The notes under the pieces are model-generated. The model ran no database searches and was not told where the DNA came from. It worked only from the letters and a program-made list of their open reading frames with translations. DNA of 64,000 nucleotides, taken from NCBI RefSeq assembly GCF_052425735.1, contig NC_135761.1, positions 33,914,001-33,978,000 of the forward strand. Direction: 5' to 3'. Within the stretch, counting starts at the first letter, position 1; each line of letters opens with the position of its first letter. Origin of the DNA: Oculina patagonica (Eukaryota). The position numbers and the translations under genes are program-made. Below are positions 451-24,359 of this stretch, one piece after another.

Positions 451-773
451 GTTGTGGAGTAGGAGTCCTGGGAACAGGTTAGCATGTCGGGTTTGTGACG
501 TCACAAATTCGCGCCAAAACCCGAGTGTAAGATGGCTGAACGAGAGGGCAATTCGGGCAAGAACGATGTCGAAAAAAAGGTGGGTGTTTTTCTTAGTTTT
601 CAAATGGTAGGCAAGACACAATACTTAGTTTAATGTCTACAACAACAGAAATGGAGTTATTGATAGTGTGACGAGCAGAAGTTGTAGATTCTTTCAGATT
701 CTTTCCGCCGATCATCGTTGTTCATGTTCATGGACGGATAAAAACAAGCTTACTTGCATTTTGTCACTCCTAA

Positions 774-880
774 TTGAATTGGATGAGTCATTGAATTGAA
801 TATGCATTGAATATGCATTGAATTGAATGAGTGATTGAATTGAATATGCATTGAATTGAATGAGTGATTGAATTGAATTA
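774..880. repeat. (TGAAT)n-like degenerate microsatellite
   Basis: Repeated tgaattgaatatgcattgaattgaatgag units. Confidence 0.8.
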
Positions 881-2394: not shown

Positions 2395-3219
2395 AATATC
2401 ACTCAGGAACAAACTGTCTGCCCTTAAGGATGGTGAAAAGTGATCTACATTATTAATTATTTAAACTGTTTGTCGAAACTTTTTTACCTTTTTCAAGCTT
2501 TTAGATTTTTGTCATGAACAAATTGTCTGTCCTACGGGACAGCTAGCAGTGAAAAGGACATTATGTTCAAGAACCACTGAGTCAGGCATCAAGATATCAC
2601 TCAGGAACAAACTGTCTGCCTTTAAGGATGGTGAAAAGTGATCTACATTATAAATTATTTAAACTGTTTGTCAAAACTTTTTACTTTTTTACAAGCTTTT
2701 AGATTTTTATCATGAACAAATTGTCTGTCCTACGGGACAGCTAGCAGTGAAAAGGACATTATGTTCAGGAACCACTGAGTCAGGCATCAAGATATCACTC
2801 AGGAACAAACTGTCTGCCTTTAAGGATGGTAAAAAGTGATCTACATTATAAATTATTTAAACTGTTTGTCAAAACTTTTTACTTTTTTAAAAGCTTTTAG
2901 ATTTTTGTCATGAACAAATTGTCTGTCCTAGGGGACAGCTAGCAGTGAAAAGGACATTATGTCCAGAAAACACTGAGTCAGGCATCAAGATATCACTCAG
3001 GAACAAACTGTCTGTCCTAAAGGTAAAGGATGGTGAAAAGTGACATTTGAATTATACTGTTTGTCAGAACTTTTTTACTGATTCAAGCTTTTAGATTTTG
3101 TCAGGAACAAATTGGCCGCCCTTAAGGGTGGTGAAAAGTGACATTTTATTCATACTGTTTCACAGAACTTTTTCACTAATTGAAGCTATTAGATTTCCGT
3201 CAGAAACAAATTGTCTGTC
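2395..3219. repeat. Tandem satellite-like array, left part (198-bp and ~99-bp units)
   Basis: actcaggaacaaactgtctg recurs at 2401, 2599, 2797 and 2995 (period 198). ggtgaaaagtgac then recurs at ~98-bp spacing (3032, 3130). Confidence 0.9.
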
Positions 3220-3350
3220 TGTGGAGTCCTGGGACTAGTAGAGTCGTCACGTGACAAGAAGGCCGTGTACGATCGAGTTAGTTGAGTTCTTGCCATGTGT
3301 GTGTTGTAACTCGGAGTTTACACACTGTTTTCTTTATTAAATACACCACA
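3220..3350 (+). repeat. 5' LTR
   Basis: tgtggagtcc...atacaccaca, identical by eye to 9753-9883; contains ATTAAA near its end. Confidence 0.97.
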
Positions 3351-3354
3351 TTTT

Positions 3355-3366
3355 TGGCGACGAGGA
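3355..3366 (+). promoter_or_regulatory. Primer binding site (probably tRNA-Ser GCT)
   Basis: TGGCGACGAGGA lies 4 nt after the LTR. It is complementary to the 3' end (..TCCTCGTCGCCA) of metazoan tRNA-Ser(GCT), as recalled. Confidence 0.75.
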
Positions 3367-3422
3367 ACGTGATCGAATACCACGACCAGGTAGACTAGAG
3401 TGAAGCGAAGTCTACACGGAAA

Positions 3423-6400
3423 ATGCCTACATTTGGGAAATTAGACGAATACAACGAAACGGAAGATTGGCGCCATTACACTGAGCGTGTAAATCACTTT
3501 TTTGAAGCAAACGAGATAACCGATCCGGACAAAAAAAGATCCATTTTCCTGGTTAGCGTGGGAGCCAAAACCTACAAGCTTATACGAAGTCTGGTCGCTC
3601 CGGAGGACCCGAAGACCAAAACCTATGAGGATTTAGCGAAACTCGCCCAGGAACATTTCATGCCAAAGCCTTCCGCTATTGTACAACGATTCAAGTTTAA
3701 CACTCGCACTCAACAAACAGGTGAGACAATTGCCATGTTTTTAGCTGAGTTGAGGCACCTGACCGAACACTGTGAATTTGGGGCAACATTAGATGAAATG
3801 CTACGTGATCGGCTTGTGTGTGGTGTTCACGACATCAGAATACAGCGTCGTTTACTAGCCGAACCGAAATTAACCCTGAAGCGAGCGCTCGATCTGGCTC
3901 TCGGCATTGAGGCCGCGGATAAGGATGCCTCGGAGATACAAAAGGGGGACTCTCAGGAAGGGGATACTCCGCTCAACAAAGTCGATTTTAAAGTGGAAAA
4001 GGGTGGCGAAGTTAATTGTTATCGCTGTGGCGGTAATCACTACCCCAAAAGCTGTCATTTTAAGGATGCGAAATGTTATGCTTTTGGAAAGTTGGGTCAC
4101 CTATCTCGAGTGTGCCAGAACAAAAAGAAAGGGAAACTACCACCTCCTAGTACTAATAAGAAGTCAGACACCCCACAGGATACCCATCTCCTAGAGGGGG
4201 GAGAGGAGGCAATGGGGAGAGAACAGGGTGTGGGTGCATATTCTTTGTTTACCCTTGGCGGTAAACAACCTTTGCCATACAAAGTACAGCTGAGTGTTGG
4301 TGGGCAAGCACTAGAAATGGAAGTTGACACAGGGGCTTCATTGTCAGTGATAAGTGAAGGCACCTACAAACACCTTGTCTCACAAAACGGGGCACCGCCA
4401 CTGGAGAAATCAGGAATTGTCCTTCGTACATACACTGGGGAAGAGGTCAAGCCCGAAGGGGTGTGTACAGTTGATGTACATTATGAAGGGGGCGAATACT
4501 CCTTGCCATTGTTAGTTGTAAGTGGAGAAGGCCCAGCTCTGTTGGGGAGGAATTGGCTGGAAGAAATTAAGCTAAATTGGCCAAGGATTAAGCAACTTAC
4601 TTCGCATGACAAGCGACTTGGAGAGATTTTGCAGAAACATGCACAGCTATTTGGGGAGGGTCTGGGGACCCTACAGGGGACAAAGGCCAAGATCCATGTG
4701 GACCCCACAGCCACCCCCATTTTCCATAAAGCCAGACCAGTGCCATATGCTCTCAGGGAGAAAATTGAGCAAGACCTGGAAAGACTTGAGAAGGCAGGAA
4801 CCATTGAACCCGTTCAATATTCCGAGTGGGCCACACCCATTGTCCCAGTTATGAAAAGTGATGGCACAGTAAGAGTCTGTGGAGATTACAAGCTTACCGT
4901 CAATAAGGTCTCGAAATTGGATGGCTACCCTATCCCCAAGCTCGATGATCTATACACAAAGTTGGCTGGGGGTCAAACGTTTACTGAGTTAGACTTGAGC
5001 CATGCTTATGAGCAGATGCTTGTGGATGAGAACTCAAGGGAGTTTTTGACAATTAACACCCATAAAGGCCTTTTTAGATATAACCGCCTTCCGTATGGGG
5101 TCTCTTCAGCGCCCGGCATCTTCCAGAGAACCATGGAGGGTTTGCTGCAAGGAATACCTTCGACAGGAGTCTTGCTAGATAATATCCTCATCACAGGGCC
5201 CAGCACGGAAGAGCACCTAGACTACATCGAGAAAGTTTTGGGACGCCTTTCTGATGCCGGCTTGCGGCTCAAAGCTGAAAAGTGCCAATTTATGAAGCCC
5301 GTTTTGGAGTGCCTGGGGCACCGCATTGACGCAGAAGGGTTCCATCCAGTTGAAGCAAAGGTGAAGGCCATCAAGGAGGCCCCAACCCCAACCAATCCCT
5401 CTGAGCTGAAGTCCTTTCTAGGGATGCTTAACTTCTATGGCAAGTTCATGCCCGACCTATCGTCCACCCTGGAGCCACTGCACGAGCTTCTGAGGAAAGA
5501 TATCTGTTGGAAATGGGGTACAGAGCAACAAGAGGCGTTTGATAAGGCCAAGAATCGACTTCAATCATCAGATGTACTCGTACATTATGATCCTGAGAAA
5601 GAGTTGGTGGTATCTTGTGATGCTTCACCCTATGGTATTGGGGCAGTGCTGGCCCATGTTATGAAAGATGGCTCAGAGAAACCAGTTGCATATGCCTCAC
5701 GAACACTCTCCACAGCAGAGAGGAACTATGGCCACCTAGATAAAGAGGCACTAGCTGTAGTTTTTGCCGTGAAGAAGTTCCATCAATTTCTTTTTGGACG
5801 TCATTTCAAGGTCTACACAGATCACAAACCACTTTTGGGGCTGGTTAACCCTGAACGAGCCACACCTCTAATGGCTTCAAGTAGGATGCAGCGATGGGCA
5901 TTGACTTTGCTTGCGTATGAGTATGAGCTTATTTATCGCCCTGGTGAAGAGAATGGAAACGCAGACGCCCTCAGTCGTCTACCCCTTCCAGTTGCTCCAG
6001 AGACCACGCCCGTCCCAGGGGACATTATACACCTTCTAGAGACCATCAACACCAGCCCAGTGGATGCCACTAAAGTGAAGTTGTGGACAGCCCGTGATCC
6101 AGTACTTTCTCAAGTTCATCCGTCCTTCACGGATGGCCCATGGCAGTCGAAGAAGAAGCCCTGAAGCCTTATTTTGCTAGAAGAGAGGAATTGAGTGTAC
6201 ATGCTGGCTGCCTACTTTGGGGATCCCGGGTCGTGATACCCCCACAGGGGAGAGAGGAAGTGTTGAACATACTACATGAGTCCCACCCCGGTATTGTTAG
6301 AATGAAAAGCCTAGCTAGGAGCTATGTGTGGTGGCCGAAAATGGACTCATGTTTGGAGGAAAAGGTGAAAAGCTGTGTTACCTGCCAAAGCCACCAAAAG

Positions 6401-6896
6401 AAGCCACCCAGTTCACCGTTGCACCCTTGGGAATGGCCCGGCCGCCCTTGGTCTCGAGTACATGTAGATTATGCCGGTCCTTTTATGGGCAAGATGTTTC
6501 TCCTAATTATTGATGCGCATTCTAAATGGATGGATATCCATTGTGTGAATTCTGCCACTTCCAGCGCAACCATCGAAAAGCTGAGGACAACCTTCGCTTC
6601 ACACGGCCTACCAGAGATTGTAGTGTCAGACAATGGGTCCAATTTTGTTAGCAGCGAGTTCAAGTCATTTCTACAGAAAAATGGCATCAAGCACATTACC
6701 TCCTCTGTCGAGACCAAGTTAGCTCGGTTCCTATTAAGTTATCGTATTACCCCCCAAAGCACCACGGGTGAGTCTCCTGCTCAGTTACGCTGGGGACGAA
6801 GTCTGAGGTCACATCTCGATCTGCTGCGACCAGATGTAGCGGCAAGGGTACATGCAGCACAATCAAGACAGAAGATACAGCATGATCAGCATAGCC
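3423..6896 (+). pseudogene. Gypsy gag-pol polyprotein (gag, CCHC knuckles, protease, RT, RNase H, integrase), disrupted
   Basis: Motifs: CYRCGGNHYPKSC knuckle; protease VDTGA; RT DLSHAY and PYGVSSAP; RNase H DASPYGIGAVL and TDHKPL; integrase HHCC, HVDYAGP and VSDNG. Lesions: RT motif reads LLDN instead of YxDD (5172-5183); frameshift near 6120; in-frame deletion near 6703 removing the usual 'PYHP.SNG.AER' segment; LINE insertion after 6896. The integrase C-terminus resumes at 9252-9640. Confidence 0.92.
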
Positions 6897-9200
6897 TCAA
6901 CATTATGAACTTTGGTCCAAGTTTCCTTAACTGGATTCGCACATTCTATAGCAATATTTCTAGTTGCGTTATCAACAATGGTCACTCTTCAGAGTTTTTT
7001 TCTCTACAAAGAGGAGTGAGACAAGGGTGTCCTCTTTCGGGACTGCTCTTTGTTCTCGCTTTAGAACCACTCGCACACCAGATAAGAATCACTGATTCTA
7101 TCAAAGGTCTCGAAAACGGGAATAAGATCACTAAACTTAGTTTGTATGCAGACGACACCACCGCTTTCATCCGCGACGACTCTTCCGCAGCGTCTCTATT
7201 TGCTCTCCTTGATCAGTTTAGCAATCTATCGGGTCTGAAAATTAATAGATCAAAAACTGAGGGTCTGTGGCTAGGTCGTTGGAAAAGCAGATTAGGAAAA
7301 GACGAGCCTTTTGGCATTTCGTGGCCGAAAGAATATGTCACTGCACTTGGAATATGTTTCCCTTATTGCGCGAATGTTGGAATCAAACTAAACTTTGATG
7401 AGAAACTTGCCAAACTTAAAAAAGTTCTTAACATCTGGTGCAAAAGACATCTAACCATCTTAGGCAGAATAGCCATCGTAAAGAATTTAGCAATCGCCAA
7501 ACTTGTTTATTGCTGCTCCGTCTTAAACGTTCCTGCCGAATTCATAAAAGAGGTCAACAGCATCATCTTCTCCTTTATCTGGAATTTCAAACCTGATAAA
7601 ATTAAGAGAAAAACGTTGATTGGCCCAGTCTGCAAAGGCGGTCTAAATATGATTAACTTTGAAGATGTTGTAAAATCCCTCAAGATTACCTGGGTTAATC
7701 GTTATTGCGAATCGGCTGGCAGTCACTGGTGTGCCCGCCTTGATTCCTTATTAAGTAAAGTCGGAGGAGCTTTTCTATTTCAATGCAATTTCGACCTAAA
7801 ATTTCTGAACCTCAACAATTTACCACCTTTCTATAAAAATATTCTTAAGGTGTGGCAAGAATTGAATTACAAGGAACCGCTTAATGCAAATGAATTCAAA
7901 CAAGAACTTTTATGGAACAACCGGTTCATAAAGACCAATGGTAAAACGGTGTATTATAAAACATGGGTAAATCAAGACATCTTAAAAATAAGTGATCTCC
8001 TCGACAATCACGACCAATTCCTCTCTTTCGAAAATTTTAAGCGCAAATTCAGCGTTCGATGCACTTTCCTCGACTACGCCGGAGTTCTCGCTGCTATCCC
8101 CAAAGCGTGGAAAAGAAAAATCACGTGCAACAGTGTCGGTGGTGTTAGCGAACTCCCAAAGGCTGATTCAAATAGCGATGATATCGTCTCCGCAAAAAAA
8201 GCCCGTTTGATGCTTGCGGAAAGGTCCTTCTCTCCCCCTACCGTCGAAATCACTCTAAGAAATCAAGTGACAAACTTAAAGGATGTCTACGAACTTCCAT
8301 TTAGAATCACCGTTGAAAATAGATTAAGAAGCTTTCAGCATAAACTCATACATAACATCATACCTACCAATCTCTCACTCTATAGAATGAAAATAAAAGA
8401 GTCACCACATTGCGAACACTGCCACTGTAAAAATGAGACACTTCTCCATAGGTTTTGTGAGTGCCCCGAAGTCAAGCTATTTTGGAAAGACGTCATAGAA
8501 TGGTGGAATACAAATCGCTCTGACAATTTCAATCCTACTTGTTCGGAAATTCTTTATGGATACAGACCTGAGAACACCAGCTATCATGCTTTCAATCACT
8601 ATCTTCTTATTGCTAAATATCATCTATATCTCGCAAGAAATCAGTCAGAGACTCCTAGCATAAAGGTCTTTCTTGCCTTACTGGAAAGCAAAATTAAATG
8701 TGAAAGACAAATCGCTATTAAAAACTCTAGCTATAAAAAGTATGAAACAAAGTGGACCACTCTCTGCATAAGCGATGCGGTAGCTTTCTTTCCACTGTTT
8801 AAGCAAAAGAGCCAGGTTTAGGTGCATTTTCTTTGTCTGTTATATTTATCCTTTATCATTTTAGTTACATTAGATCTGTTGTTATAGTAAGTAGCTGTAT
8901 TAGTTTAGTGACAATTTCAGTTTTTTTTGTAAGTGCAGTGTAAGTTCTGTCAATTAGCTCTTGTGCCATGTATAGCTTTATAGTATTTTAGTCTCTTTTG
9001 TATTTAAAAAATATATATTTCACTGTAAGTAGTAAGCATCGCATTGTAAGTAGTGTAAGTGTTGTAAATAGTATACAGTGTCGAATTGTAAGAAGCGCAA
9101 GTGTCGTATTGTATTGTGTACAGCTTAAGTATTTGTACAATAAGTAGTGAGTAGTGGGCATACTTTTTTTGTATTTTTGTAAGTGATGTGCTTTTGTGTG

Positions 9201-9236
<36 letters not shown>
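6897..9236 (+). mobile_element. 5'-truncated L1/Tx1-clade LINE inserted in the Gypsy integrase
   Basis: 15-bp TSD ATGATCAGCATAGCC at 6882-6896 and 9237-9251, with poly(A) at 9211-9236. The ORF2 part contains GVRQGCPLSGLLF, YADD and a C-terminal CxxC..ETLLHRFCEC zinc finger; stop at 8821. Confidence 0.95.
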
Positions 9237-9237
<1 letters not shown>

Positions 9238-9740
9238 TGATCAGCATAGCCGAATGCGTCAAGTGGAAGTCGGCGATTCAGTGAATGTTCGAAACTACTC
9301 CAGAGGCCCCAAGTGGATTCCAGGAACTATCATCCAGGAAACTGGTCCTTTGTCTGCGAGAATTGAGTTGGAAGATGGAACTGTGGTTCGAAGACACCAC
9401 GATCAACTAGCTGCTCGACCCACAGAAAGTTTCAACCCTGGTGTCACATTACCAATTACTAGCCCATTGCAGCAGGAAGGTGTGGATCCAGAGATAACCG
9501 TACCTGATGTAAATGACCCCGAGGTTGTCCATGGAGACAGAGAACCACCCAGTGCAACAATGGTTCGGGACTCGGGGCCAACTACCCCTGTCAGGCGATA
9601 CCCAGCGAGGAATAGAAACCCCCCGCAGCGTTTTTACTAATGGACTCATTCCCTCCCCCGTGAACAGTTTTAAGTTTTAGGGCAGAGGCGTTAATTTTTT
9701 TTTCTCGTTGACGTTTGTTTTCTTGCTTGTTTCAGAACTT

Positions 9741-9883: not shown

Positions 9884-10570
9884 CTGTCCTAATTTAAGGG
9901 TGGTGAAAAGTGACATCATATTGATACTGTTTGTCAGAACCTTTTACTGATTCAAGCTTTTCAATTTTTGTCAAGAACAAATTGCCTTTCCTAAAGGATG
10001 GTGAAAAGTGACATTATATTTAAACTGTTTGTCAGAACTCTTTTACTCATTCAAGGATTAGGATTTTTGTCAGGAACAAAAAAAGGACATAATGTTCAGG
10101 AACCACTTAGTCAGGCATCAAGATATCACTCAGGAGCAAACTGTCTACCCTTAAGGGTAGTGAAAAGTGATCTACATTATAAATTATTTAAAAACTGTTT
10201 GTTAAAACTTTTTTACCGTTTCAAGCTTTTAGATTTTTGTCAGAAACAACTTGTCTGTCCTAAAGGATGGTGAAAAGTGACATCAAATTCAATACTGTTT
10301 GTCAGAACTTTTTTACTGATTCAAGCTTTTAGATTTTTGTCAGAAACAAATTGTCTGCCCTAAAGGGTGGTGAAAACTGACATTATTTAAACTGTTTGTC
10401 AGAACGTTTTTAGTGATTCAAGCTTTTAGATTTCTGTCAGAAACAAATTCTCTGTGAAAATTAAGTGACATTATATTATTCATACTGTTTGTCAGCTAGA
10501 TCTTTGATGAATTATAAAGAAAATTATGTGACATTACATATGTTAATACTGTACGTTTGTCAGAACTATT
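9884..10570. repeat. Tandem satellite-like array, right part
   Basis: Same ggtgaaaagtgac...caagcttttagatttttgtcag unit as 2395-3219, continuing in register across the LTR element and decaying toward 10570. Confidence 0.88.
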
Positions 10571-10961
10571 TTTTCTGAGAAGTTACTAAACTTGCTGATT
10601 AAAACATTACGGCATGCTTGTGGACTGTGGCATATTTATAAGTCAATGCAGGTGACATTTATTATGAAACCACAAAATAATAAATTATATTTTAATATTT
10701 TTTTGCATATAATTTTTGATATTCCCGTTACAGTTATTGTTAGGTATGTTTACCGTACCCAAATTCGCAAGTAGCCAATCAGAAGCCCGATCTACTGTCC
10801 TGATATCCTACGATATCAAGTCACTGACCTGATATGCCACTATATCACGGTCACTTTAAATTAAAGTAGTGTTTCCGTACGATGAATTGAAAAGAGGTTT
10901 TACATGGAAACATGCCAAAAGTTCAAAAGAATGTCTTAACTACAAGAAAGGTGTTCAATGT

Positions 10962-12226
10962 TCAGTTATCCGGGTAGCGGATATGTAACCTTTTGATACC
11001 AGGTGGTAGGGGGTGATGCAGTCCCTTTTTGGCCGGGTTCTTTTTTGGTGCTGTTGGTTGCGCTTGTGAAGGCCTCTTTGTGGGAGTCTTGACAACTTTC
11101 TCTGTATCTTCTGAAGTATTTTCATTTAGTTGATCATCTGAATTTTCTGGCGTACTTTCGCGAATGACACGCGGTTTCTTCTTGGGTGCAGTTTTCTTTT
11201 TTTGTAGAGGCGTACGTGCTTGCACCTTGGCATACAAAGAAAGATCTTCTTCACCATTTGAGTCGTCGGATTCATTTCTTTGTAGCGGCGTCTTGTTTCT
11301 TGGTTTTGGCCTTTTGGGCTTGGGGCTTTTGGCTGCAGATCGTGTTCTGGTACGTTTTGTACGTACGGGTGGCGGCGGAGGATCTTGTTGGGTCAGGAAA
11401 AGGTTTCTTTCTTGACTGTCTTCGTCTACCATACAGTCTTCATTTTCTGCTATGTCCTGCCACATTTGGTCGTACGATTCGTCTCCTTCAGCCAACACGT
11501 CGTTAGAATCTACCGTGTTTTCTTCTTCATTTTCTTCTGAGTCTTCCCAGAAGGAGTTTTGCGGGGCTATGTTTGTGGTGTCTGTTAGGTCAGCCCACAC
11601 GTCGGCTGCTGCTTGATCTGCGGTTGCTTTATTACCAATGTGCAAAATGACATTTTGCAGGTATTGTTTGAGGCCTTTTGCTGTGGGATCTGCTTTAAAC
11701 GCTGCCACTTGTGCTTAGATGCCCAATCTTTGGGGTGGTTTGCCAGCGTTTGTAAAACCATTAATTGCGCTGCGATGTGGTACATGGCACCACTTGCCGC
11801 GAAGAATTGTTTCGTCAATGTCATCAGCTTGGGGTCCATGACCGTTTTAATTAATAGATTCAGATCTTCTTTTGTTGGCTCCTCTGCGACATCTTGGTCC
11901 TTGTTGTTAAATCTTTGTAACGCTGTTTTTAATGGCTTGAACTTGTCGGTTAAGTAGGAAATGGTGCCTTTTGTGAAGACTTTTTCTTCGTACTTTTTGA
12001 GGGTCGGCAAATTGCTGTAAATAGAGCTCGATAACTCCGAGATGGCAATACTTGGACGGGTTAGCCATTCTGAAGTCCAGAGAGTGGTGCTGTCTAATAT
12101 TTCTGTATCGGTCATCACGCCTTTTGTTTTGCCATACGGTGGCATCAATTCTCTCACTGTATGCTTAAAGTAATTGACTGCTACTTTATCGGCAGGTTCA
12201 AAGGTCTTTTTTCTTGTGTAAGCCAT
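10962..12226 (-). pseudogene. Unknown protein (globular N-terminus plus acidic/basic disordered tail), frameshifted near 11705
   Basis: ORFs 11585..12232 and 10962..11708 join via a frameshift (..WASKH / VAAFKADPTAKGLKQYL). ATG at 12226. Intronless, and directly downstream of a Pif1 C-terminus. Confidence 0.6.
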
Positions 12227-12297
12227 CTGCAATCAAGAAAGCAGTCGTTAAGGAATTGATAAGAGACGTTTAGAGAACGACATCTAGCTTTTGGCAG

Positions 12298-12490
12298 TTA
12301 GTCAACAGGGGTGAAATGGTGAGGGCGCAGCGTTGTCAAAAACGCAATGTCTTGTAATTTTCGTACTCTGGACAGAGCGACGTACCCCAGACCCACAGGC
12401 ACATGTTCGCAATCCATCCACACTACTAGTTTTTCTATTGTCGCCCCTTCGCTCTTAGATATGGTCATGGCGTAGGCTGGTACCATAAGT
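12298..12490 (-). pseudogene. Pif1/RecD-family SF1 helicase C-terminal fragment (Helitron-like)
   Basis: PAYAMTISKSEGATI (motif V) and GLGYVALSRVR (motif VI). Confidence 0.8.
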
Positions 12491-13230
12491 AGCTGGTGCT
12501 TACCGGTCGTAAAATGAGAAAAACTTTCCCACCAAAACTAAACTTGAGCGCGCTCGCCAATAGCGCGATGTTTGCCGACGAGTACTGAAACATTCACACT
12601 GAAACAATGGAGTCGGAGTTTCCAAATTTTTCGCTAAATTTGGATTTTGAAAATTTAGGGAATGAAACTCCAAACAAGCGAATAAAAAAATGCGATGAGA
12701 GGACTTGATAAAAGTGTTGAAGGCCAAAAAAGTATCAATACAAGCAGGTCAACACATTTTGCACTACCTGTCTGGATTTGGCTAAATTTGGGTACGGTAA
12801 ATACCTAATCGTACCTTTTTGGTACGCTTCAGCGGCATATCAGGCTCGTTTGGTCTCGCCATGGGTATTTTGGCTCGACCAAACTCGCCAAAATACGAAC
12901 CATGGCTCGACCAAACTCGCCTGATATGCTGCCGAAGCGTACCAAAAAGGTACGATTAGGTATAAGTATTGTTCCATGAAGATTTTATGAAAATACACAA
13001 TTTAAACTATCTGGTATATGTCATATGGAATATTACTTGAGAAAGTTCCTTGACAAGCACCCCTGAGGGAGACCAGTGCTGGAATAAAGGGCTGTGGAGA
13101 ATCAAGAGCTGGACTGGCAAGGTAGAGTTGGCTGAGGTGGGCTGGGTGGCTAGGCCTGCATGGTTATAGTGGAGCTTCCAGCAGCCCAAAGGGCCGCAGA
13201 GCAGAGCCCCATACCCATAGAAAATTAACA

Positions 13231-13713
13231 TATGAAGTGTAATGTCCGCCAAAATTATACTTGGTATTACGCTAGTGGAACCTGCAGTTTTGTAATTGCG
13301 TTCCGATATCTTGCAATTGGAACCTGCTCTTTTGTTATCGGGTTCTGGTATCTTGCTACTGGAACCTGCTCTTTTCTTTCGTCTTCTGGTGTTTTGCTAC
13401 AGAATCCTGCTTTTTTGTTAATGCGATATTGCATTTTGTTTCTTTGTTCTTGCATTCTGACATTTTGCCATTGGATCATTACAACCTGCACTTTTGTCAT
13501 TTCGTTCTGACATCTTGCTATTGAAAACTTCTCTTTTGTTATTGCTTTGTGACATTTTGCCATTAGAAAATTACGACCTGCACTTTTGTTGTTGTGTTCT
13601 TCTACTTTGATGGTGTTAATTTCATTTTGGTGTTTTGACAAGGTAACATGCAGTTCGGCATGGCACTCAGTGACGCGTTTTTGGACACAATAATTTATTT
13701 CCCGCCAAAATGT
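13231..13713 (+). repeat. Left terminal inverted repeat (483 bp)
   Basis: Reverse complement of 23730-24212; internal ~42-bp subrepeats. Confidence 0.97.
13698..13709. promoter_or_regulatory. E2F-type site TTTCCCGCCAAA at the inner edge of the left TIR
   Basis: Matches the TTTSSCGC consensus with an overlapping TTTGGCGG on the other strand. It lies ~90 bp upstream of the E3 ATG and is mirrored at 23734-23745. Confidence 0.5.
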
Positions 13714-13801
13714 AAGTATTTTAATTTATGCAAAAATCTCGCGAAATGATTGGTTGAAAAGTACTCGTCGGCGAAAAGGCCATGTGATCAATGTGATCAA
13801 C

Positions 13802-16800
13802 ATGGCGGACCAAGAAGACTCGCAAACACCATTTGACCATCACAGGGCCGTTTCTTTGCTCGTAGAAGCAACCCAGTTTCTCAGGGAATACTCAGGCGGC
13901 AGTGCTGTGTCGACTCAAAGCCGTAGCGGCGAAAATTCCGAGATTCAGCCTACAGGATCACGCCGGAATGAACCGAACAGCAGCCAAAGATTACAGGCGA
14001 ATCACTCAAGGTTTCCTCACACAACAACAACAACTTCGAGCGTATTTGCAGACCAGAACAGGCAGGGAAACGAAGATAACGTGCTTGGCGGAAGTTTGGC
14101 ACGAAACAGTGCTGCAAATGGAAGAGTACTTGATAATTTTCGAAGTCTGTTTTCACCCTATGGTCGCGAAACGTCGTCAACTAGCTCATCAAGTGTACAA
14201 TCGCCATCCGCCAGTAAGAGAAGGAAACGTAACACATTGTTCTTTAAAAGAGAAACTTGGACTCACGAATTTTTCTGCTTGGCAGATAAAGATCAAATGG
14301 TAGCACCCAGCAGATCTTTAAAGATCCAACTTCAGGAGGCTGGCTTAGGCCGCAAAAAAGTATGCCTTAATGGTAGAGCTGACGCAACGGAGGTGAAGAC
14401 GACTCTAGAAGAAAGCTATCCGAAGTTAAAAGAGGGTGGAGGATTTGAGATACTAAGACGTGGCCCAAGCCCTAGCGAACTGACCTTAATTCCACCACCA
14501 CCATCGGGATATACTGTAAAATTCTTACGCGACTCCGCAGGATTGGGGCAAGCAATCGCGTTTGTGAGACCATTGCAATGCAACCTCAACCGGGAAGCCA
14601 TCAAACCTGTTCAGTCAGACCACAGCCAGGTGGGTGTTCAAATAATTATATTATTATATTCACTTCGGAAATTTTTAAAAGGCTACAGAGGACTGGCAAT
14701 AGAGATGAAAATTCTGTTTTAATGCACCAAATGATCCTTCCCCCTCATTTCTTTGAGCCATTTGAATACACCTACGGCACATTTGTTATCTTTGGGACAT
14801 TTTAGGCAAAAGGATCTGTGACATCACCCTATATAACCAATATCTTTCAATGTATCTTTGTATGTGTCTCTGAAACAGGATTCTGGCAGTGTTCCAAAAG
14901 TTGCTTGTATCAACTGTAGTCTTGAGATTCCAGTAACTCTTGTCAGACAACATTTGGCTGTTTGCTGCAATGATGATGACTTGTGAGTACAATTCACATG
15001 TAATAGTAATGAAAAATACAGTTTAGGTTGTTTTGAAAAGTGATCAAAGTTTTGTAATTTTCTTGTAAATGTATTTAGCAGTATGAAAAGTCTATCCAAT
15101 TGTTCTATCTCATACTTTTGTTGTTAGGTTACATGGTCTCACTCCTTCTAGAGTCAAAAATGGGTACTGAGGGACCTAACTGCACCTAAATACATGTAGT
15201 AACAATTCCTAAATTACAATTCCTTTTACCATCGTGGCAGAATTTTGAAAAGTGTAAATGTTTGTTTCTCTAGACAACTTGAAATGCCTACAAATATTTC
15301 AGTTGACAGAAACAGGCAGTTTGTGCTGATTTCTAATCTTATCCTTTGGTAGGCCAGACATTGCTTGTAGTGATGGAACCACAAGTACAGAATCCATAAC
15401 TCAAGTGAGGACTTAATTCATTATACACCTGTAGACTGAATTTTAGTTATACAGGATGAATGTACAGTCTAGCACACAACCTACATCTATTTCCTTTACC
15501 ATCTACATGTTTATCATTTAAGGGACCGGTCATAAAGTACAGGGGGGGGGGTGGGCTATGAAATTTTTTCTTTTTAAGTACTGATTTTCAGTGGCCCACC
15601 CCCGAATTATTTGACAAAATTGGGGCGGCCCACCCCTGGAGTGGCACAGAAAAACCAAGTGGCCCACCCCCCCCCCCCCAACCAAAATCAGTAATGTAGA
15701 TAGGTACATAGGGAACATTGGCTTACCACTTTAGTCAGAATCTCCAAAAACTTTTCGAGATCAAAAGTTTGAATCATGTCAGTGTTAGAATCCTGAAATG
15801 CTATTTTAGACATTCTGCTAGAATTTTTGTACTGTAACGGTCGTAGATGTAGCCTCTGCAGTTTAAGGGGACACTAATAGTTGGTGGTTTTGAGTTAATG
15901 ATGTTTTTACAAAGCAAAGTCAGGAGCCCATGGCAAAGTAAAGGGGTCCGGGGGAATGCTCCCCTGGGAAAATTTTGATTTTAGAAACACAGAAATACTA
16001 TTTTAGGCATTCCGGTAGAATATTTGTGCCATTGTAGATGTAGTCTCTGCAGTTTAAAGGGATAACAATAGTTTGTGTTTTTGAGTTACGATGTTTGGTA
16101 CATGGCAGATTAGGGGGTCTGGGGGGATGTTCCCCCAGGAAAATTTAAATTTTTAACACCTCAGAAACGCTGTTTTAGGCATCCTGATAGAATGTTTGCG
16201 CTTTTATAGATGCTGTTTAATGAATAATTTAACCATGACCCACCCCTAATGCAGTGCATTTTTTTTCCTGACCCACCCTTTTTGACAAGTTGAAAAATAG
16301 TGGCCCACCCCCAATTTTTCATAGCCCACCCCCCCCCTGTACTTTATGACCGGTCCCTAATACAACATGGCAATATACTTTTCATGGGATGGGTAGATTT
16401 TATATTCACGTCTATCAGTGTGCTAAATATGCTGTTTGCATGAGCCATGAGTGATTTTCAATTGGGAAATTTGATATTATTAAATCATTGTGAAACTGTT
16501 ATATTTATTGGACTTCATGTATTTGTCCAATTATATCAATGAGTGTAATTTTATTAGTCAAATGTTGTGCTTTTAGGCCCCTGTACTTTTAAGTTCTCCA
16601 TCCAGTTCCACTGGTGATGTGCATGCCACTTTCAATAACAATTTGAGTGGTGAAGAATTGAGTAGTTCCACTGCACACCCACTGTCACTTGTAAGTTTGT
16701 CTGTGGCAAAGTGCTACTCTTAGTGATAAAATTAATCTTTTCCCAAAAACAAACTACACTGTACATGGAATTAACAGGTATTTTTCTAAATGGTAACAAA

Positions 16801-19800
16801 AAATATACTATTACTAGTACATAATTATATGCCAGTAGTCTATTACCTGTAGGCATTGTTATATGTATTTTCTGCTACTAAGTACATGTTAGTTCAGTTA
16901 AAATTGCAGAGAAATGTGATCTCCAAATGCTACTGGAGTTGCTTTCATTATGTCTAGTACAACTGTCTCAGTTCATTTGTAAGGATTTATTGCGTTCTCG
17001 TGTGTAAATGATATGACAGTGTAGTTGATTGTATTTGGCAAGCTTTGGGGCAAAACTGGCTACATGCCATATCCAAGATGTATGTGTAATCATACTGTAT
17101 GTTTAGAATATATTTTTGTGATGAAGTAGACCTCATATATATGATATTGTTTTCATCTACTGTAGGACCCTGCTGCTGTAGCAGAGCTGCAGTACTTATT
17201 CCCAGATAAGGATGAAGATTCTCTGAGAGATGTACTTAGCATATGCGAGGGAAACTACAGTTTAGCAGCTTCCAGGCTTGTGAACTGGGATGGCAAGTGA
17301 CATATAATTACCTTAAATAAACAGACCTGGTTTTCTTTTCAGGGAAATGGGTTCATTATGGTTTAAATACAACTTATTTTTTCTTATTTTTTCCATATAA
17401 TGAATCATGGTCTCTTGTACTTGCTAGGAATGCGATAATGTCACAACAACTTATTTTCCAATTTATGTTCTATTATCTGTCATTTGGTGGCCTACGGGAG
17501 GTTAAAAACAAAGAAAATTTCAAACTTTTAGCTCTAAAAGTGTTCATGGTCGCTTACGAGATGTGGTCGTTTACAAGAGGTTCAAAATATAGTTATTTGA
17601 CTAGGAAACTTTTGGTACTTTGGAAAATTAAGAGGTGGTCGCTTATGACAGGTTGCAACCAGAGGTTCGACTATATTTATGTTACATCCACGTTCTCTCT
17701 CCTCTATAGAAAACCAGGCAAGCTCATCCTGTTATCTGGTAGATGAGAGTAAGGATGATGGCAATGACAGTGACTTGATGCAATCTGCATTCAGTTTGGA
17801 TTATTCAAGTAATTTAGGTATTGGATTTATTTGTAGATGTATGTGCCTCATTTCTTTACCCAAGTGTACAACAGGTCAGATATGTCCATGATTGAATGCT
17901 AATGAGATGCACGTTTCTCATGGCAGGCATCACAAAGTGTCCTCATTAAAATGTTCACCAAAACACACCAAAATCTGTCAAATATGAAGTTATATGGAAA
18001 TGCCAAATAACACAGTCAAACATGAAGTACTCATTAAACAATACTTGCATTCAATCCTGGACCAGAGATATCGCAAAGGGCCAGCTGCCAGCTAATTTCA
18101 CCGGCTGAAAGAGATTTCACATGAAAAAACACGAAATTTCACATGAAAACAAGGGCTTAGGTAAACTTTAAAAGATTCCAGGGCCAGAAAAGCCAGTTGG
18201 GCTTGTTGATGAACCGGCTTAGTGTTTTCTTAGCCTGTAAAGCCTGTAAAGACGGTGGTCTGTGTTCCATTAATGTGTAGTCTTTGCTTTGTTTGTAGCT
18301 TAATATGCTAAATAATGCTTAGTATCTGTAAATCCACCCTCCTTGAAATAACATAACTTAGGCATGCTATTAAATAAATAAAAGACATTATCACTATTTT
18401 ACATTAGTGTATTGGAGGTTTGGTGAAGTGAAACTGAACTGCCTATACTTTTATTCATATTTCTTTAGATGAAGATCTACAAAGTATCATGGGGAAGCAC
18501 AGACGACAACTGAACTCTCAAGAATGCAACAGATTAACTGTAGACCGGGAACAATTCTGGGAAGACTGTGTGGTGTTCTTTAAAAACCCAAAGTTCAATC
18601 CAAGATATCCCTTGAGAATCAGATTTGCAGGTGAAGCTGGGCTTGATGCTGGAGGACTTCGTCGTGAATTTGGCTCTCTCTTAATCAGTAAATTGTTCTC
18701 CTCAGAAGCCAAGTTATTTGAGGGTAGTGATGGTAGAAAAGTTCCTGTATGCAATGCTGATGCTGTACATTCAAACCTTTTCCACTTAGCTGGAAAGATT
18801 TGTGCCTACCTGTTGTCCCACTTAGACCTTGGTGTATCTTGCCTTAGTCCAGTGATCTATTCGTACATTGCAACTGATGAAGTCCATGAAGCATCAAAGC
18901 AATGCACCCTGGAAGATATACCAGACTACGACTTGCGTAAATTCATTGAAGAGGTATATATGTGGATGCAACACACATGAATGAGTTTTCTTTTGGATTC
19001 TATAAGTTTTTTTGGACATTTTAACGTGAGTGCAGTAAACAAGTAAACCTGTATAATTGGTCTCCAGTACAGTGCAAATATTGGGGATTGTTTGGGCTTA
19101 ATTTGCAATTGGTTAAATTGCAATTACAACTGCAATGATCACATATTCATTTCCAAAGTTCACATCATCTTCATATGTTTGTAACTTATTTACATTTTGA
19201 ACCTTATTGGAAACTGCTAGTTGGTGGTGGCCCCAGCACAAATCAAAGTTTCGGGGCCCTCTTACATGACTGTTATGATTTAGTTCCCCCCTAAGAATAA
19301 CACAAAAAACTTTTCAACAGTACGTAGCTGGGCTCAGAATTAAAAAGACGGTTTCCTTGTGGCAAGTTCAGAAAGCAGTAAGGAAAAATTTTCAGCTACT
19401 CTTGGAGGACGTTGACCAAGGAAAACTTACAAGGATACCTTCTCAATTTTTAGGATTTATATTGACAGTTCACATTAATCCTGCTAGAAAGATCGTATTT
19501 TAAATTAACTTGTATTTGTGTCAATTTTTTTTTTGATTGCATGTGTTTAACACTGGTATATTGCTTTGATTAATTGAGGATATCTTTGAACATGTAGGTG
19601 AATAATGCGAGCTCTAATGACGAACTTCAGAAAGTCTTGGATGGGAATGATCAAACAGACGCACTGCTAGCAGGAGGATGGGTGCGTGTCTTAACGGTGG
19701 AAAATAAAGGCTTGGCAATGTGGCAGTTGATGATACATGAAGTTATTTTGAAGAGAAAAGTAGCACTTGACCAGTTTTGTGCAGGTTTAAAGGTTCTGGG

Positions 19801-20681
19801 TGTCCGCGAATTGTTGATGGCTCACAGCAAAATCATGGAACCCTACTTTGTTGCAAGGGAGCAGACTCCTCTCAGTGCCGATGCTGTTCTTGGACTGTTT
19901 GAAGACATCTTACAGCAACAGTCAGATGTCAAAAAGGAGCAAGCCCGGCAGCATCTGATCAACGCTATAACAGATCTGGATGTTGAAGGTGCAGTTGTGA
20001 TAGAATAATTTATATTCTATTTGATTTGTTCTATTTTAATCAGTATCTTTATTCACACAACCCCACAAGCTTTATGCTTTAACTATCTTGTTTTTTAATA
20101 CTTTTCTATAAAAATGCCCATTGCTTTACAGGAGGCACTGCCTCATTTGGTTTGTGCTCACTGGGATTGATATAACAGTGATGTGGGATGAAAATAACAT
20201 CAATTATCACGTCCTTGATGTTAAGTTACTGAGCATTTGATGGGGAAGGAAGATAGTAAAAGCACCTACATCCCTCCCTGTTTATAGAATTTTAAATAGG
20301 CCATTTCCGAGTTACCCTTTGCCTCTGTTTCAATCATTTGAATGGTTTTGCACATAGACTCATTTTGAAACAGAGGCTAAAGGTAACTCGGAAATGGCCC
20401 ATTTAATGTTAAAAAATGTCTTGTTTCCTTTCCTTGATGCAGATTCCAAGACCGATCTTCAACACTTTCTGCACTTCTTGACAGGCCTGCAGAAAATTCC
20501 TCCTTTGGGACTAGAAACAAATCTAACAATCACTTATAAGGAGGACACGTCCAAGACTCTTCATGCGGACGTTTGTGCGTACAACTTGAATGTACCTACA
20601 GTCCACGATACCTATGGAGAATTCCAGCATTATTTTCTTCTGACCTGCCGAGTTGGTTATGTTGGCTTTGGCCTAGTTTAG
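13802..20681 (+). CDS. HECT-domain E3 ubiquitin ligase (G2E3-like HECT) with UBZ-like finger and CUE domain, ~815 aa, 9 exons
   Basis: Exons predicted by hand: 13802-14629, 14879-14982, 15353-15404, 16577-16690, 17166-17292 (GC donor), 17710-17817, 18469-18953, 19598-19988, 20443-20681. Phases are compatible; total 2448 nt with no internal stop. HECT motifs: RIRFAGEAGLDAGGLRREF, QFCAGLKVLGV, FLHFLTGLQKIPPLG, ADVCAYNLNVP (catalytic Cys) and C-terminal GFGLV* (-4 Phe). Confidence 0.88.
15522..16357. mobile_element. PIF/Harbinger-type MITE in E3 intron 3
   Basis: TIR GGGACCGGTCATAAAGTACAGGGGGGGG..TGGGCTATGAAA at both ends; 3-bp TSD TAA at 15519-15521 and 16358-16360. Confidence 0.9.
17405..17673. 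mobile_element. Decayed MITE fragment (TA-type end) in E3 intron 5
   Basis: Repeated ggtcgcttacga/gtggtcg motifs ending in gaggttcgactata; only one end is visible. Confidence 0.45.
20295..20403. mobile_element. Short palindromic MITE in E3 intron 8
   Basis: ggccatttccgagttaccctttgcctctgtttcaa ... ttgaaacagaggctaaaggtaactcggaaatggcc forms an inverted repeat. Confidence 0.8.
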
Positions 20682-21185
20682 CGTCACTTGTAATACCGCT
20701 TACTAATAATACACAGGTGTTTTGGCCTTGGTATGAATGTTTGAAAGGATCTACTAAATTAGCCACTGTTAAAAAATATTCATGTTGTGTTTCATTACGT
20801 AACAGATCGGGTACTTCCTATCATACAATCCTGTTGAGTTTTAACTTCATTCCCTTGTTGATGTTATTGATAGTAATGTCTACGATGACTTTGTTATTGA
20901 TACATGTTACGAAGTCTACACTAGGAGTTCATGGTTTCGTTCATTTCAGTTTGCATCGATTTAGTTACATGTTATTTCAGTGGAGTGCAGGACTGTGATT
21001 TTGATATTTAAGTTGTCATTTTTAATACCTTATATCAATATTCTTGGTACACGGAGCATTGAGAAAGAGATCTAATAGTTCCTGTTTGGCACTATCCCAA
21101 TATGTTAATCACAGAGAAGCTTACAACATTGTTACTCAACGTTATGATGATCATGGAAAAAATTTGTCAAAGTTTATACCTGACA

Positions 21186-21232
21186 ATTAAAGTTGTTTTT
21201 ATTACATTGTTAAACATCTAATTTCCTTTATT
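21186..21232. terminator. Facing poly(A) signals between the convergent genes
   Basis: ATTAAA on + at 21186-21191; AATAAA on - at 21198-21203 and 21227-21232. Confidence 0.45.
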
Positions 21233-21264
21233 CTATCTCAGTAACACCTTCACTGTTATCAAAG

Positions 21265-22710
21265 TCAGACGTTCCTCCATTGCTGCATGAATGACAGTGC
21301 ATTCAAGTAAATATCGACACCATAATACATGGAAGGTTCAGCAAGATCCACTTGCCTGGCAAGTGCCTGTATGCCTTGGGAGTCTAAAGCACAAAACGTT
21401 TCTGGAACCTGAACAATGACGCTGTCATCTTCGACTATTCCATCCCACTCTTCGGATGGGGCAGGTCCGTCCCAGTCGATGCCATATGCATTTCGATCCA
21501 CCTGCAAAAAATGTTTACTGCGTGTAATTATGTTTCTTTGGTTGCTTAGGCTAACGTGTTATCGCACACATACAGTGTAAGTAAAGACCCCTCCTCCACA
21601 AACACACACACCACTACACATGTGTAGATATCCCCAGGGATCCAAATTTTGCATTATACGAACTTGATTAATATATCATCAGAAATTGAATACCTGGCCA
21701 TTGAACTCTTCTGCAACTCTTCCAGTGGAATTTGACAGCATTCCTCTAATCCATAGTTGTTCTGGTGATTTGTTATGCTCAGTACTAAGTGGTCCCCTGT
21801 TGTGACCCTCGGCAAACAGGGACAGGTTTCTGTTAATACGGGGTAAGAACACATAGATGGAGTGCAGCCAAATGAAGTTCGTTTGTGATGTCTAAGACTC
21901 CGCATGCTTCCATATAGTAAAACAAATGGTAAAAAACAAATATACACCCAGAGAACATGTCCCTCCATAACCTCTCTATTCTCTGGTTGTGGACACTTCT
22001 CCCCGTAATGTGGCTTCCACGATCCGGCCCTCGTAGTGGGTGCGATAGCATGAACCATGCTACGTCAGTATTTTCTTTACCTTTGTCGGAACGTACTCTA
22101 GATGGAAGGCCGAACTTTTCGACTGCTGACTGGAATGCATCAAAAACAGTGCTGGCCCTGTTGTTTGTTGCACATCGTAGAAATACTATCATTCGAGAGA
22201 AACCGTCGATCCCGCCGTGTATGACAAACCTCCACCTGAAGAGTAACATGCCAAACACGTTAATCAGAAATTGTTAAGATAGCATCAAGAATACTAAAGG
22301 TAGCTTTAAAAGTTGGTTGTTACTGGAAAGCGTAAATAGGATTTTTTGTTCTACCTCTACCCCTGCCTTAGGGTTAGGTTTAGGGTTAGAAAAACAGCCC
22401 TCCTTCACCGTGACGTTGTAATCCGTTACCCGTTTTCCTAACAGACCTGACAAATACTTGCCTTTAGGAGAGGCAGAGGCTAGAAGGGAATTTCGGTAAA
22501 AAAAAAGAAATCAGTTCAAACTTACTTAAATGATTTAGATTTGTTCTCTCTAAAGGACATAACCCTCGTTTTCACTGATAGATAATGACCGTCTCAATTT
22601 CAAAAGGAATACCCCCCCCCCCCGATCTGGCCCCATCGTAGGGCATTTGCTCATGGGGCAATTTCACAAGGCAATTTCTCATGGGGTTATTATTATTATA
22701 ATTATAATTA

Positions 22711-22742
<32 letters not shown>

Positions 22743-22787
22743 GAATAAGACTAAATTTTGATAAACATCGCTTATTTTTATTGTCAA

Positions 22788-22841
<54 letters not shown>

Positions 22842-23711
22842 GGGCTTTTGTTTACAGGAGAGAACGATCATTCCTCAGGGAATGAACGTTCTCTCCTCAG
22901 ACTGAATCGCCGCAGAGGTAACAATCAATTTACACGCACAGTAACTAGATCAAACGAGAAGAGTAAACCGAAGTTCTTCCAATGTCATGCAATGTAAACA
23001 GTGTAATAATTACCTGATTAATTTGTGGTTTCCATCTATGTGCCATAAGGACAGAGGTCCTTGGACATAGTAAGATCTCCTTTGTATTAACCTTAACTCC
23101 AATGCACGTAGAAGCACACCTTCAGGATTTACTCGACGCATACACTCTCGAATCCTAGACTGCTGAATACGGAGGCCACGACTCAGCAACAGCCCACTCA
23201 TTCGTTTGCAGCCAACGTTTGGAAAGTCAGCTATAATATCGTTGACTATGGCATCTAATTCGGCATCTGACAAACGAGCAAAGTTTGCTCTCACACTGAG
23301 CCCAAACTCGCTTAAACGCCTTTCTAATGTTCGCTTGCTGACACCAAACAGTAGAGCCATTTCTTCAACAGTGAATCTTTTCTCTGTGAGGAATTCTAGC
23401 TGTTCTTTGGGTATATCAAACGCTGGTCTACCCCTTTCACCATTAAATGTCTTCTGAGCCTGACACGATGTTGACAGGCTTCCACTACTCGATCTATAAA
23501 GACAATCTTTAGCTTCTCTTAAGCAGCGAACTATTCTCGCGTCAATAATTCCAGTGTCAAGGTATCTTACCGTTGTGTGATAGAGCCAATCAATACGATA
23601 GTATAAGCTGTCGATTCTGTCTGAATCAAGTATTTCTGAAGCCAACTCCCTTATGATAGAAACGAGCGAGTTATTTAGAAGACGTCTTATCATTGCCTGT
23701 TCGTCCGCCAT
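21265..23711 (-). CDS. IS3/integrase-like DDE transposase, 3 exons, ~491 aa once a single 1-bp frameshift is corrected
   Basis: Exons 23711-23014, 22235-21694 and 21501-21265 (GT-AG, compatible phases). HTH-like region ([20 protein letters not shown]), then [53 protein letters not shown] (D,D,E) and C-terminal YGIDWDGP. One extra base at ~21856-21857 breaks [10 protein letters not shown]. Confidence 0.88.
22686..22841. repeat. Two (ATT)n microsatellites in transposase intron 1
   Basis: ATT tracts at ~22686-22742 and ~22788-22841. Confidence 0.95.
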
Positions 23712-23729
23712 CTTGGACTCGAGACATAC

Positions 23730-24212
23730 ACATTTTGGCGGGAAATAAATTATTGTGTCCAAAAACGCGTCACTGAGTGCCATGCCGAACTGCATGTTAC
23801 CTTGTCAAAACACCAAAATGAAATTAACACCATCAAAGTAGAAGAACACAACAACAAAAGTGCAGGTCGTAATTTTCTAATGGCAAAATGTCACAAAGCA
23901 ATAACAAAAGAGAAGTTTTCAATAGCAAGATGTCAGAACGAAATGACAAAAGTGCAGGTTGTAATGATCCAATGGCAAAATGTCAGAATGCAAGAACAAA
24001 GAAACAAAATGCAATATCGCATTAACAAAAAAGCAGGATTCTGTAGCAAAACACCAGAAGACGAAAGAAAAGAGCAGGTTCCAGTAGCAAGATACCAGAA
24101 CCCGATAACAAAAGAGCAGGTTCCAATTGCAAGATATCGGAACGCAATTACAAAACTGCAGGTTCCACTAGCGTAATACCAAGTATAATTTTGGCGGACA
24201 TCACACTTCATA
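23730..24212 (-). repeat. Right terminal inverted repeat (483 bp)
   Basis: Reverse complement of 13231-13713. Confidence 0.97.
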
Positions 24213-24359
24213 TTAACAGACCCATGCTTTTGGTTACTCATGGTCATCAGGGCTAGCAGTATGGTTCGCGGGTATGTGCACCCTAGCGACGACATCGCTC
24301 CAACATGACAGCTCCCATACTCCATACTGGGATGGTTAGGCTGGGCTGGAATGGCTGAA

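Follow-up and report, generated by a model that had tools for sequence, protein, structure and literature searches.

A DNA transposon of Oculina patagonica with a HECT ubiquitin ligase gene that recurs beside the transposase in divergent IS3EU/GingerRoot-like elements

Introduction

Does a ubiquitin ligase gene that lies between the ends of a DNA transposon serve the transposon, or is it a host gene that was picked up once and has no wider meaning? The question is raised by a 64,000-nt stretch of contig NC_135761.1 of Oculina patagonica (referred to as a whole as the window; coordinates are positions within it unless another locus is named). Here an element of 10,982 bp at 13231-24212, delimited with a repeat finder and by reading its ends, holds two convergent genes between terminal inverted repeats (TIRs), one coding for a DDE (Asp-Asp-Glu) transposase and the other for an E3 ubiquitin ligase of the HECT type.

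Enzymes known to be encoded by eukaryotic DNA transposons include ubiquitin- and SUMO-pathway proteases as well as dioxygenases, kinases and nucleases. Accessory enzymes are likewise precedented in the IS3EU superfamily, since fungal IS3EU elements, together with other DNA transposons, carry TET/JBP dioxygenase and alpha-kinase genes (PMC12730594); the gene order of these fungal elements is conserved, with the genes in opposite orientation, and the enzyme is thought to counter host silencing (PMC12730594). For a conserved E3 ubiquitin ligase partner of a eukaryotic DNA transposon, we found no described case in the literature.

We consider it probable, with good confidence, that the window element is a young, structurally complete IS3EU/GingerRoot transposon from a clade that has a HECT ligase as a partner serving the element. 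This two-gene clade is known so far from cnidarians (stony corals and a hydrozoan) and from metagenome contigs, and its ligase and transposase genes nearly always stand tail to tail. The common ancestor of the sampled elements already had the ligase gene. Since then this gene has for the most part co-diverged with the transposase, although it has been lost now and then and has probably been exchanged at least once, and as a component of the unit it has entered many different sites.

Results

A single inverted pair dominates the window (13230-13713 versus 23730-24213); the 484-nt arms reported by the repeat finder take in one base of the duplicated target, and the true TIRs measure 483 bp. Compared base by base, these differ only at 13241 (A versus G), and they are flanked on both sides by the same hexamer, a match with a chance of 1 in 4096. 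A near-perfect inverted repeat of this length cannot have arisen by chance. An earlier note on this DNA, written from its letters alone, had described TIRs of this length with one mismatch and a perfect TTAACA target site duplication (TSD), and this description was confirmed. The element ends in TATGAAG...CTTCATA, giving it TA..TA termini. It also keeps a TATG tip and, about 20 nt further in, a CAAAATT box, features common to the termini of the related elements described below, which read TATGG...CCATA and in most cases place the same box about 20 nt inside TATGG. Two arrays of direct repeats within the TIR (Table 1) are likely candidates for transposase-binding sites. An in-window search found no further copies or fragments of the element in the rest of the window, and a scan of metagenome contigs for the TIR tip gave no match.

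A HMMER scan with the exon that encodes the N-lobe of the HECT domain identified 1137 relatives of the ligase, mostly exon-sized gene calls, and the DNA around eight of these was fetched. The ligase-transposase pair was found in seven other loci (Orbicella, Porites and Clytia included), in a convergent arrangement in 6 of the 7 and bounded by TIRs in 5 of the 7. Between paired elements, pairwise identity is 23-50% for the ligase and 46-66% for the transposase, with the window transposase 47-66% identical to those of related elements. This recurrence in divergent elements with TSDs of their own supports the earlier proposal that the E3 moved as part of the unit and is the dedicated partner of this transposon lineage. 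One of the paired loci (L005) holds, in addition, a second, degraded copy of the convergent pair; a fetched locus without the pair (L003) holds a degraded ligase fragment only, amid retroelements.

The search was also run from the other side, using a transposase profile to scan metagenome contigs. This gave 80 loci, of which the 20 with at least 3 kb of sequence downstream of the transposase were taken as informative, and a convergent ligase gene lay within 8 kb in 14 of these 20, so that a count of paired loci that does not start from the ligase came out in favour of the pairing. At least seven copies in assembly WLWD01 have a common TATGG terminus and seven different left flanks, and are therefore separate insertions. 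In the transposase tree, loci without a ligase are scattered among ligase-bearing ones; two of those that lack it are clearly derivatives. One (L040) is nearly identical to a locus that has the gene (L036), and the other (L022), reduced by deletion to 4.2 kb, keeps a perfect TSD, CTCCTT.

Maximum-likelihood trees of seven elements, built from the ligase N-lobe and from the transposase, have an identical unrooted topology, ((win,L005),(L006,L009),(L010,(L004,L007))), where win is the window element; this is one of 945 possible topologies, and several nodes of the ligase tree are weakly supported. We judged co-divergence by tree topology in preference to the Mantel test. When 15 elements were compared, 4 of 12 splits were shared by the two trees versus 0.35 expected by label shuffling (P = 0.0007). 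The ligase is under purifying selection with its catalytic residues kept: against a 75%-identical ligase fragment (L003), the ratio of nonsynonymous to synonymous substitution rates (dN/dS) is 0.23 over 247 codons, with dS at 0.69, in line with the earlier note's proposal. Since the ligase has stayed with the transposase across deep divergence, it would appear to be useful to the element.

The nine ligase exons (Table 1), when joined, give an open frame of 815 amino acids (aa), and all eight introns are spliced out in contigs from RNA runs (X1, X2 and X4, under three organism labels) that were aligned to 14600-20599; ligase sequence is carried by public RNA-labelled runs under these three labels and by a coral metatranscriptome. 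Seven of the introns are GT-AG and one, intron 5 (17293-17709), is GC-AG. An RNA contig of 2445 nt shows 0-1 differences from the window ligase exons per listed piece. The gene is thus transcribed and correctly spliced in the family to which the window element belongs, and the intact nine-exon HECT E3 previously predicted, with its catalytic Cys and its Phe at position -4, is borne out by the spliced contigs and by residues Cys781 and Phe812. As a separate observation, contigs of run X4 skip exon 2 (14879-14982), joining 14627 to 15351; as this exon is 104 nt long, the resulting isoform is out of frame.

By sequence, the HECT domain is recognisable and divergent. The last exon scores 25.1 bits against Pfam HECT, with a cut-off of 23.9, and the N-lobe exon matches the solved HECT chains of TOM1, SMURF1/2 and HUWE1 among PDB sequences at E = 4e-5 to 1e-4. 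The catalytic Cys is aligned in the proteins of the window, L005, L006, L008, Clytia and Orbicella, that is, in every lineage for which a C-lobe was found, and the -4 residue is Phe in all three complete C-termini (window, Clytia and Orbicella). The N-terminal domain of the ligase is kept across the family. Exon 5 probably encodes a CUE module: its match to Pfam CUE (E = 0.0018, 18.4 bits) falls under the 21.1 cut-off, and in the Orbicella relative a weak CUE match (E = 0.011) lies at the same place, where a three-helix bundle is modelled. Two other assignments were tried and not kept. A ubiquitin-binding zinc finger (UBZ) in exon 2, where a CxxC...HxxxC pattern is visible, was rejected as no zinc-finger or other Pfam family matches 14837-14983 at E <= 0.1; and a ubiquitin-like (Ubl) fold for exon 1 of the window ligase was not endorsed, the model of this exon having a predicted local distance difference test score (pLDDT) of 51, too low for a search by fold.

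For the partner protein from Orbicella, P0175, an AlphaFold model with a mean pLDDT of 81 predicts a compact N-terminal alpha/beta domain, the three-helix bundle at the CUE match and a full HECT domain. In a Foldseek search with this model, four reviewed G2E3 orthologues rank first (E = 1e-17 to 2e-19, the best 1.8e-19), the next family being SMURF2 at about 4e-14; against solved HECT domains the model gives E of about 1e-12 over some 390 aligned columns. The three PHD/RING-like zinc fingers that precede the HECT domain in G2E3 have no Pfam match in exon 1 or in proteins P0162, P0175 and P0178. The transposon ligase is therefore G2E3-like and not G2E3, only its HECT part resembling that protein. 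A profile search also retrieved an Oculina patagonica NCBI protein (P0179) that is named "G2E3-like" and is 89% identical to residues 373-815 of the window ligase. The first twelve residues of P0179 come from the subterminal region on the transposase side, and its reading of exon 8 is in part in a different frame, from which we conclude that P0179 is a rearranged copy of the element's ligase annotated as a host gene. The suggestion that "G2E3-like" annotations include transposon genes is, in this one case, supported. Word-based searches with the Clytia protein returned just its own isoform and one weak match, and look-ups of the window ORFs and of P0179 as exact proteins gave no entry.

The likeness to G2E3 brings with it the possibility that the ligase is catalytically silent, and acts as a scaffold or a ubiquitin-binding adaptor with a structural role. 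G2E3 and "GL-Metazoa" are fast-evolving HECT families, described in a survey that makes no mention of transposons (Grau-Bove et al. 2013, PMC3673628), and the HECT domain of human and mouse G2E3 is described as non-functional in the part of that account that cites Brooks 2008 (PMC3673628). It is mainly this report that calls for caution about ligase activity, given that G2E3 is the nearest reviewed protein by fold; the transposon HECT domain is also very divergent, barely over the Pfam cut-off and with PDB sequence matches of about 1e-5. Against a silent protein stand the retention of the catalytic Cys in all aligned lineages and of the -4 Phe in the three complete C-termini, the low dN/dS, and the full bilobal HECT fold predicted with high confidence for the Orbicella partner. 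On balance, we regard a silent ligase as unlikely.

The transposase gene (Table 1) runs convergent to the ligase gene, on the opposite strand, and its exon boundaries, all GT-AG, are inferred from sequence and homologues. Within the gene, 22258-21833 gives Pfam matches to rva_4 (6.4e-57) and rve (2.3e-8), and the protein has an N-terminal part resembling a helix-turn-helix (HTH) and catalytic residues D226, D283 and E320. Its N-terminal exon has no zinc-finger match, and the full-length transposases of relatives match HTH families only. Homology continues in one frame to about 21857 and resumes in another at about 21855, and the exons sum to 1474 nt, leaving a remainder of 1 on division by three. 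In four relatives (L004, L005, L006 and L007) the segments on either side of this point are in one frame, and three (L007, L009 and L010) have uninterrupted open reading frames (ORFs) of 488-546 aa. As assembled, the window transposase stops 46 residues past the catalytic Glu, without some 125 C-terminal residues, and lacks the uninterrupted frame of an autonomous element. Because the frame breaks after the DDE triad, the window copy is probably non-autonomous and probably depends on transposase supplied by sister copies. The element had been described as a complete transposon with two convergent spliced genes; its structure, the convergence and the ligase stand, while the broken transposase frame had been missed.

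Could the break be an artefact, and the window copy fully autonomous? The splice sites, the DDE triad and the open C-terminal exon are all intact, the exon sum is out by a single base and the TIRs differ at one base only, all of which would suit an assembly error; however, the break does not lie in a homopolymer run, the usual place of errors in long-read assemblies, and we find this explanation rather doubtful. Programmed frameshifting, as in bacterial IS3, was rejected because the break interrupts the core domain instead of separating two ORFs and shows no slippery motif, and a tiny intron was rejected because homology resumes one base after it stops, which leaves no room for one.

Table 1. 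Features of the window element, with paired elements from other assemblies in the last five rows.
Feature	Position	Strand	Basis or remarks
Left TSD copy, TTAACA	13225-13230		direct reading; same as 24213-24218
Left TIR, 483 bp, tip TATGAAG	13231-13713	+	inverted repeat, base-by-base comparison
Two subterminal direct-repeat arrays in the TIR, ~42 bp x 3.6 and ~50 bp x 3.3	13271-13600	+	Tandem Repeats Finder; secondary inverted pairs I2-I8
HECT E3 ligase gene, 9 exons, 815 aa	13802-20681	+	splice joints in RNA contigs, splice-site check, open frame
Ligase exons 1-5	13802-14629, 14879-14982, 15353-15404, 16577-16690, 17166-17292	+	
Ligase exons 6-9	17710-17817, 18469-18953, 19598-19988, 20443-20681	+	
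Exon 5, probable CUE three-helix module	17166-17292	+	sub-threshold Pfam match; model of a relative
Catalytic Cys781 codon	20574-20576	+	34 residues before the C-terminus; context ...VCAYNL...
Phe812 codon, -4 residue of the HECT C-terminus	20667-20669	+	context ...GFGLV
DDE transposase gene (rva_4/rve type), 3 exons	23711-23014, 22235-21694, 21501-21268	-	
Transposase frame break (~21856) and exposed stop (21835-21833, codon 367)	21833-21859	-	
Right TIR, 483 bp	23730-24212	-	inverted repeat, base-by-base comparison
Right TSD copy, TTAACA	24213-24218		direct reading
L005, European Nucleotide Archive (ENA) assembly			convergent pair; TIRs ~190 nt; ends eroded
L006, Porites lobata			convergent pair; TIRs complex, ~430 nt; flanks one base offset
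L007, ENA assembly			convergent pair; TIRs 88 nt, 92%; no recognisable TSD
L009, ENA assembly			convergent pair; TIRs 362 nt, 100%; TSD AACTTG, perfect
L010, Orbicella faveolata			convergent pair; TIRs ~420 nt; flanks agree at 5/6 positions

Discussion

The assignment of the window element to IS3EU/GingerRoot was made against published descriptions, which give as hallmarks TA..TA tips, a TSD of 6 bp and a DDE transposase that is integrase-like and has no HHCC zinc finger ahead of its core (PMC10045372, PMC6839031). The window element has TA termini, a TSD of 6 bp, TIRs and a DDE transposase that lacks this finger and has an HTH-type N-terminus, and the TATGG..CCATA termini of its relatives fit the motif TAYGG..CCRTA of fungal IS3EU elements (PMC12730594). 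The TA ends and 6-bp TSD that the earlier note had given for IS3EU agree with these sources (PMC10045372, PMC12730594). Such elements are already known from corals, and the TIR length reported for them is 100-150 bp (2019, PMC6839031; Kojima et al. 2023, PMC10045372). The window element differs from them in its much longer TIRs, and its clade differs in having a conserved HECT ligase gene. We found this HECT-ligase variant of a known superfamily in no paper: neither "ubiquitin" nor "HECT" appears anywhere in PMC6839031 or PMC12730594, and no description of the pairing was found in the full-text literature, a search that did not cover Repbase entry notes.

Several observations weigh against the view that the ligase is a standing partner of the transposase. 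Eight of the 14 ligase-bearing loci in the transposase-first sample are copies of one family in assembly WLWD01, so the 14 of 20 do not amount to 14 independent lineages. The Mantel test on seven elements is weak (r = 0.30, p = 0.09), and with 15 elements the two trees are only partly congruent, so that of the expected agreement between transposase and HECT phylogenies the seven-element part stood and the wider part held only partially; moreover, of the four shared splits, one groups L010 with L033, whose rows are nearly identical. The locus L038 (metagenome contig Ga0099808_1055005) is placed in conflict by the two trees, with an SH-aLRT branch support of 99 in each: its ligase groups with the window element and L005, its transposase with the Clytia/Orbicella clade, a hint that element lineages now and then exchange their ligase modules. 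No TIRs were found around the same-strand gene pair of Clytia, and the ligase of L008 is followed by about 3 kb of contig in which no transposase was found. Finally, with its frame-broken transposase the window copy is itself no demonstration of a working pair.

Some of these points would suit a ligase that is, or has become, a host gene, the known copies being remnants of an old association. In Clytia hemisphaerica (L004, 10001-19219) the ligase and transposase genes lie on one strand, 3.8 kb apart, annotated as ordinary genes with isoforms and with no detectable TIRs, and this pair may have been immobilised or domesticated; at L008 the ligase has no transposase in the downstream sequence seen; and in the window the ligase is intact and expressed while the transposase is broken. 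However, near-perfect TIRs with TSDs enclose the ligase in the window, L009 and L010, in WLWD01 it has been copied with the transposase to many sites, and single domesticated copies elsewhere would leave the nature of the window locus unchanged. We therefore think domestication very unlikely as an account of this locus. The remaining alternative, a recent one-off pick-up of a host HECT gene in the style of Pack-type elements, which would rob the pairing of wider meaning, can be set aside as scarcely credible: Selaginella GingerRoot elements reportedly take up fragments of host genes (PMC6839031) and no second copy was found in the window, but the ligase gene is complete, spliced and constrained, not a fragment, the pair recurs with its own TIRs and TSDs in elements whose ligases are as little as 23-50% and transposases 46-66% identical, it recurs again in the transposase-first sample, and the seven-element gene trees agree.

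The fungal TET/JBP elements offer a parallel for a ligase that serves its element, as they too have an enzyme gene between the TIRs beside the transposase, in conserved order and with the two genes oppositely oriented; the enzyme is a dioxygenase or kinase in fungi and a ubiquitin ligase in cnidarians, and whereas TET/JBP genes hop between transposon superfamilies, the HECT ligase largely co-diverges with its transposase.

A link between DDE transposition and ubiquitin ligation is also found in the RAG system, where the N-terminal RING finger of RAG1, which is derived from ProtoRAG/Transib, has E3 ligase activity, and where ProtoRAG carries two convergent genes between its TIRs. The likeness thus extends to the convergent gene pair (RAG evolution is treated in PMC4411706). 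In RAG1, however, the ligase is a RING fused to the transposase, while the window element encodes a separate HECT protein beside a transposase from an unrelated superfamily. G2E3, for its part, shares with the transposon ligase a highly divergent HECT domain and is its best reviewed structural match, but the transposon ligase has no PHD/RING fingers, has an N-terminal domain of its own and a probable CUE module, and is encoded by a transposon.

How might the ligase serve the element? As an accessory factor it would most likely ubiquitinate a nuclear target, which could be the transposase or a host protein of DNA repair, chromatin or silencing, and the putative CUE module, if it binds ubiquitin, may guide the ligase to that target. 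The activities put forward in the earlier note, namely degradation of silencing factors, remodelling of target chromatin or turnover of the transpososome, are speculative. A bolder reading, which we consider improbable, is that the fast-evolving "G2E3-like" HECT genes of animals belong largely to this IS3EU clade, that vertebrate G2E3 is their kin (as a domesticated copy or as the captured source) and that transposition requires the ligase as a co-factor; the ligase would then both recognise and place ubiquitin marks where the element is excised or inserted, and these elements would be the first known case of DNA transposons with an E3 ligase of their own.

With two genes and defined ends, the window element and its relatives provide a tractable system for asking how a transposon may manipulate host ubiquitin signalling, and open questions about the repair of excision gaps, the removal of transposase from DNA and the escape from silencing. 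Annotation is affected as well. In the genomes of corals and other cnidarians, genes that bear the name "G2E3-like" or "uncharacterized HECT protein" can belong to transposons, and transposon genes that go under host-gene names inflate apparent gene-family expansions.

Additional observations

The inner ends of both TIRs (13700-13720 and 23723-23740) read ...CCGCCAAAATG. On the left, CCGCCAAAATG is followed by GTAAGT-like letters, a possible splice donor of the 5' untranslated region; on the right, what comes next is the ORF with which the Oculina protein P0179 begins.

Two of the related elements show rearrangement or decay. The Orbicella faveolata element (L010, 6257-16325) contains two ligase genes, at 7029-9211 and 10001-12830, together with a third, internal and partial TIR copy at 9457-9649, from which we conclude that a partial tandem duplication took place inside it. 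In Porites lobata (L006, 18768-19511) the N-terminal region of the transposase has an in-frame stop, and with the one-base offset of its flanks this locus appears to be an older, decaying copy.

The introns of the window ligase hold small repeats, one a 42-nt inverted pair at 20292-20406 and the second extending over about 17800-18400. Summed RNA-contig depth reaches 500-6700 on these intronic repeats versus 5-45 on the ligase exons, and they probably belong to abundant families resembling miniature inverted-repeat transposable elements (MITEs); no copy of either repeat was found elsewhere in the window. No Rfam family matched anywhere in the window.

About 270 bp to the left of the element, at 12801-12963, two 64-nt arms of an inverted repeat, 91% complementary and separated by 35 nt, possibly represent a small MITE. 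Further left, 3423-8821 (plus strand) contains one long ORF of 913 aa and another of 893 aa: the first codes for a PNMA-like gag, an aspartyl protease, a reverse transcriptase and RNase H, and the second for an integrase (H2C2 and rve) followed by a second reverse transcriptase with zf-RVT. This region looks like the pol region of a long terminal repeat (LTR) retrotransposon abutting a non-LTR fragment, and on its account the neighbourhood of the element is rich in mobile elements.

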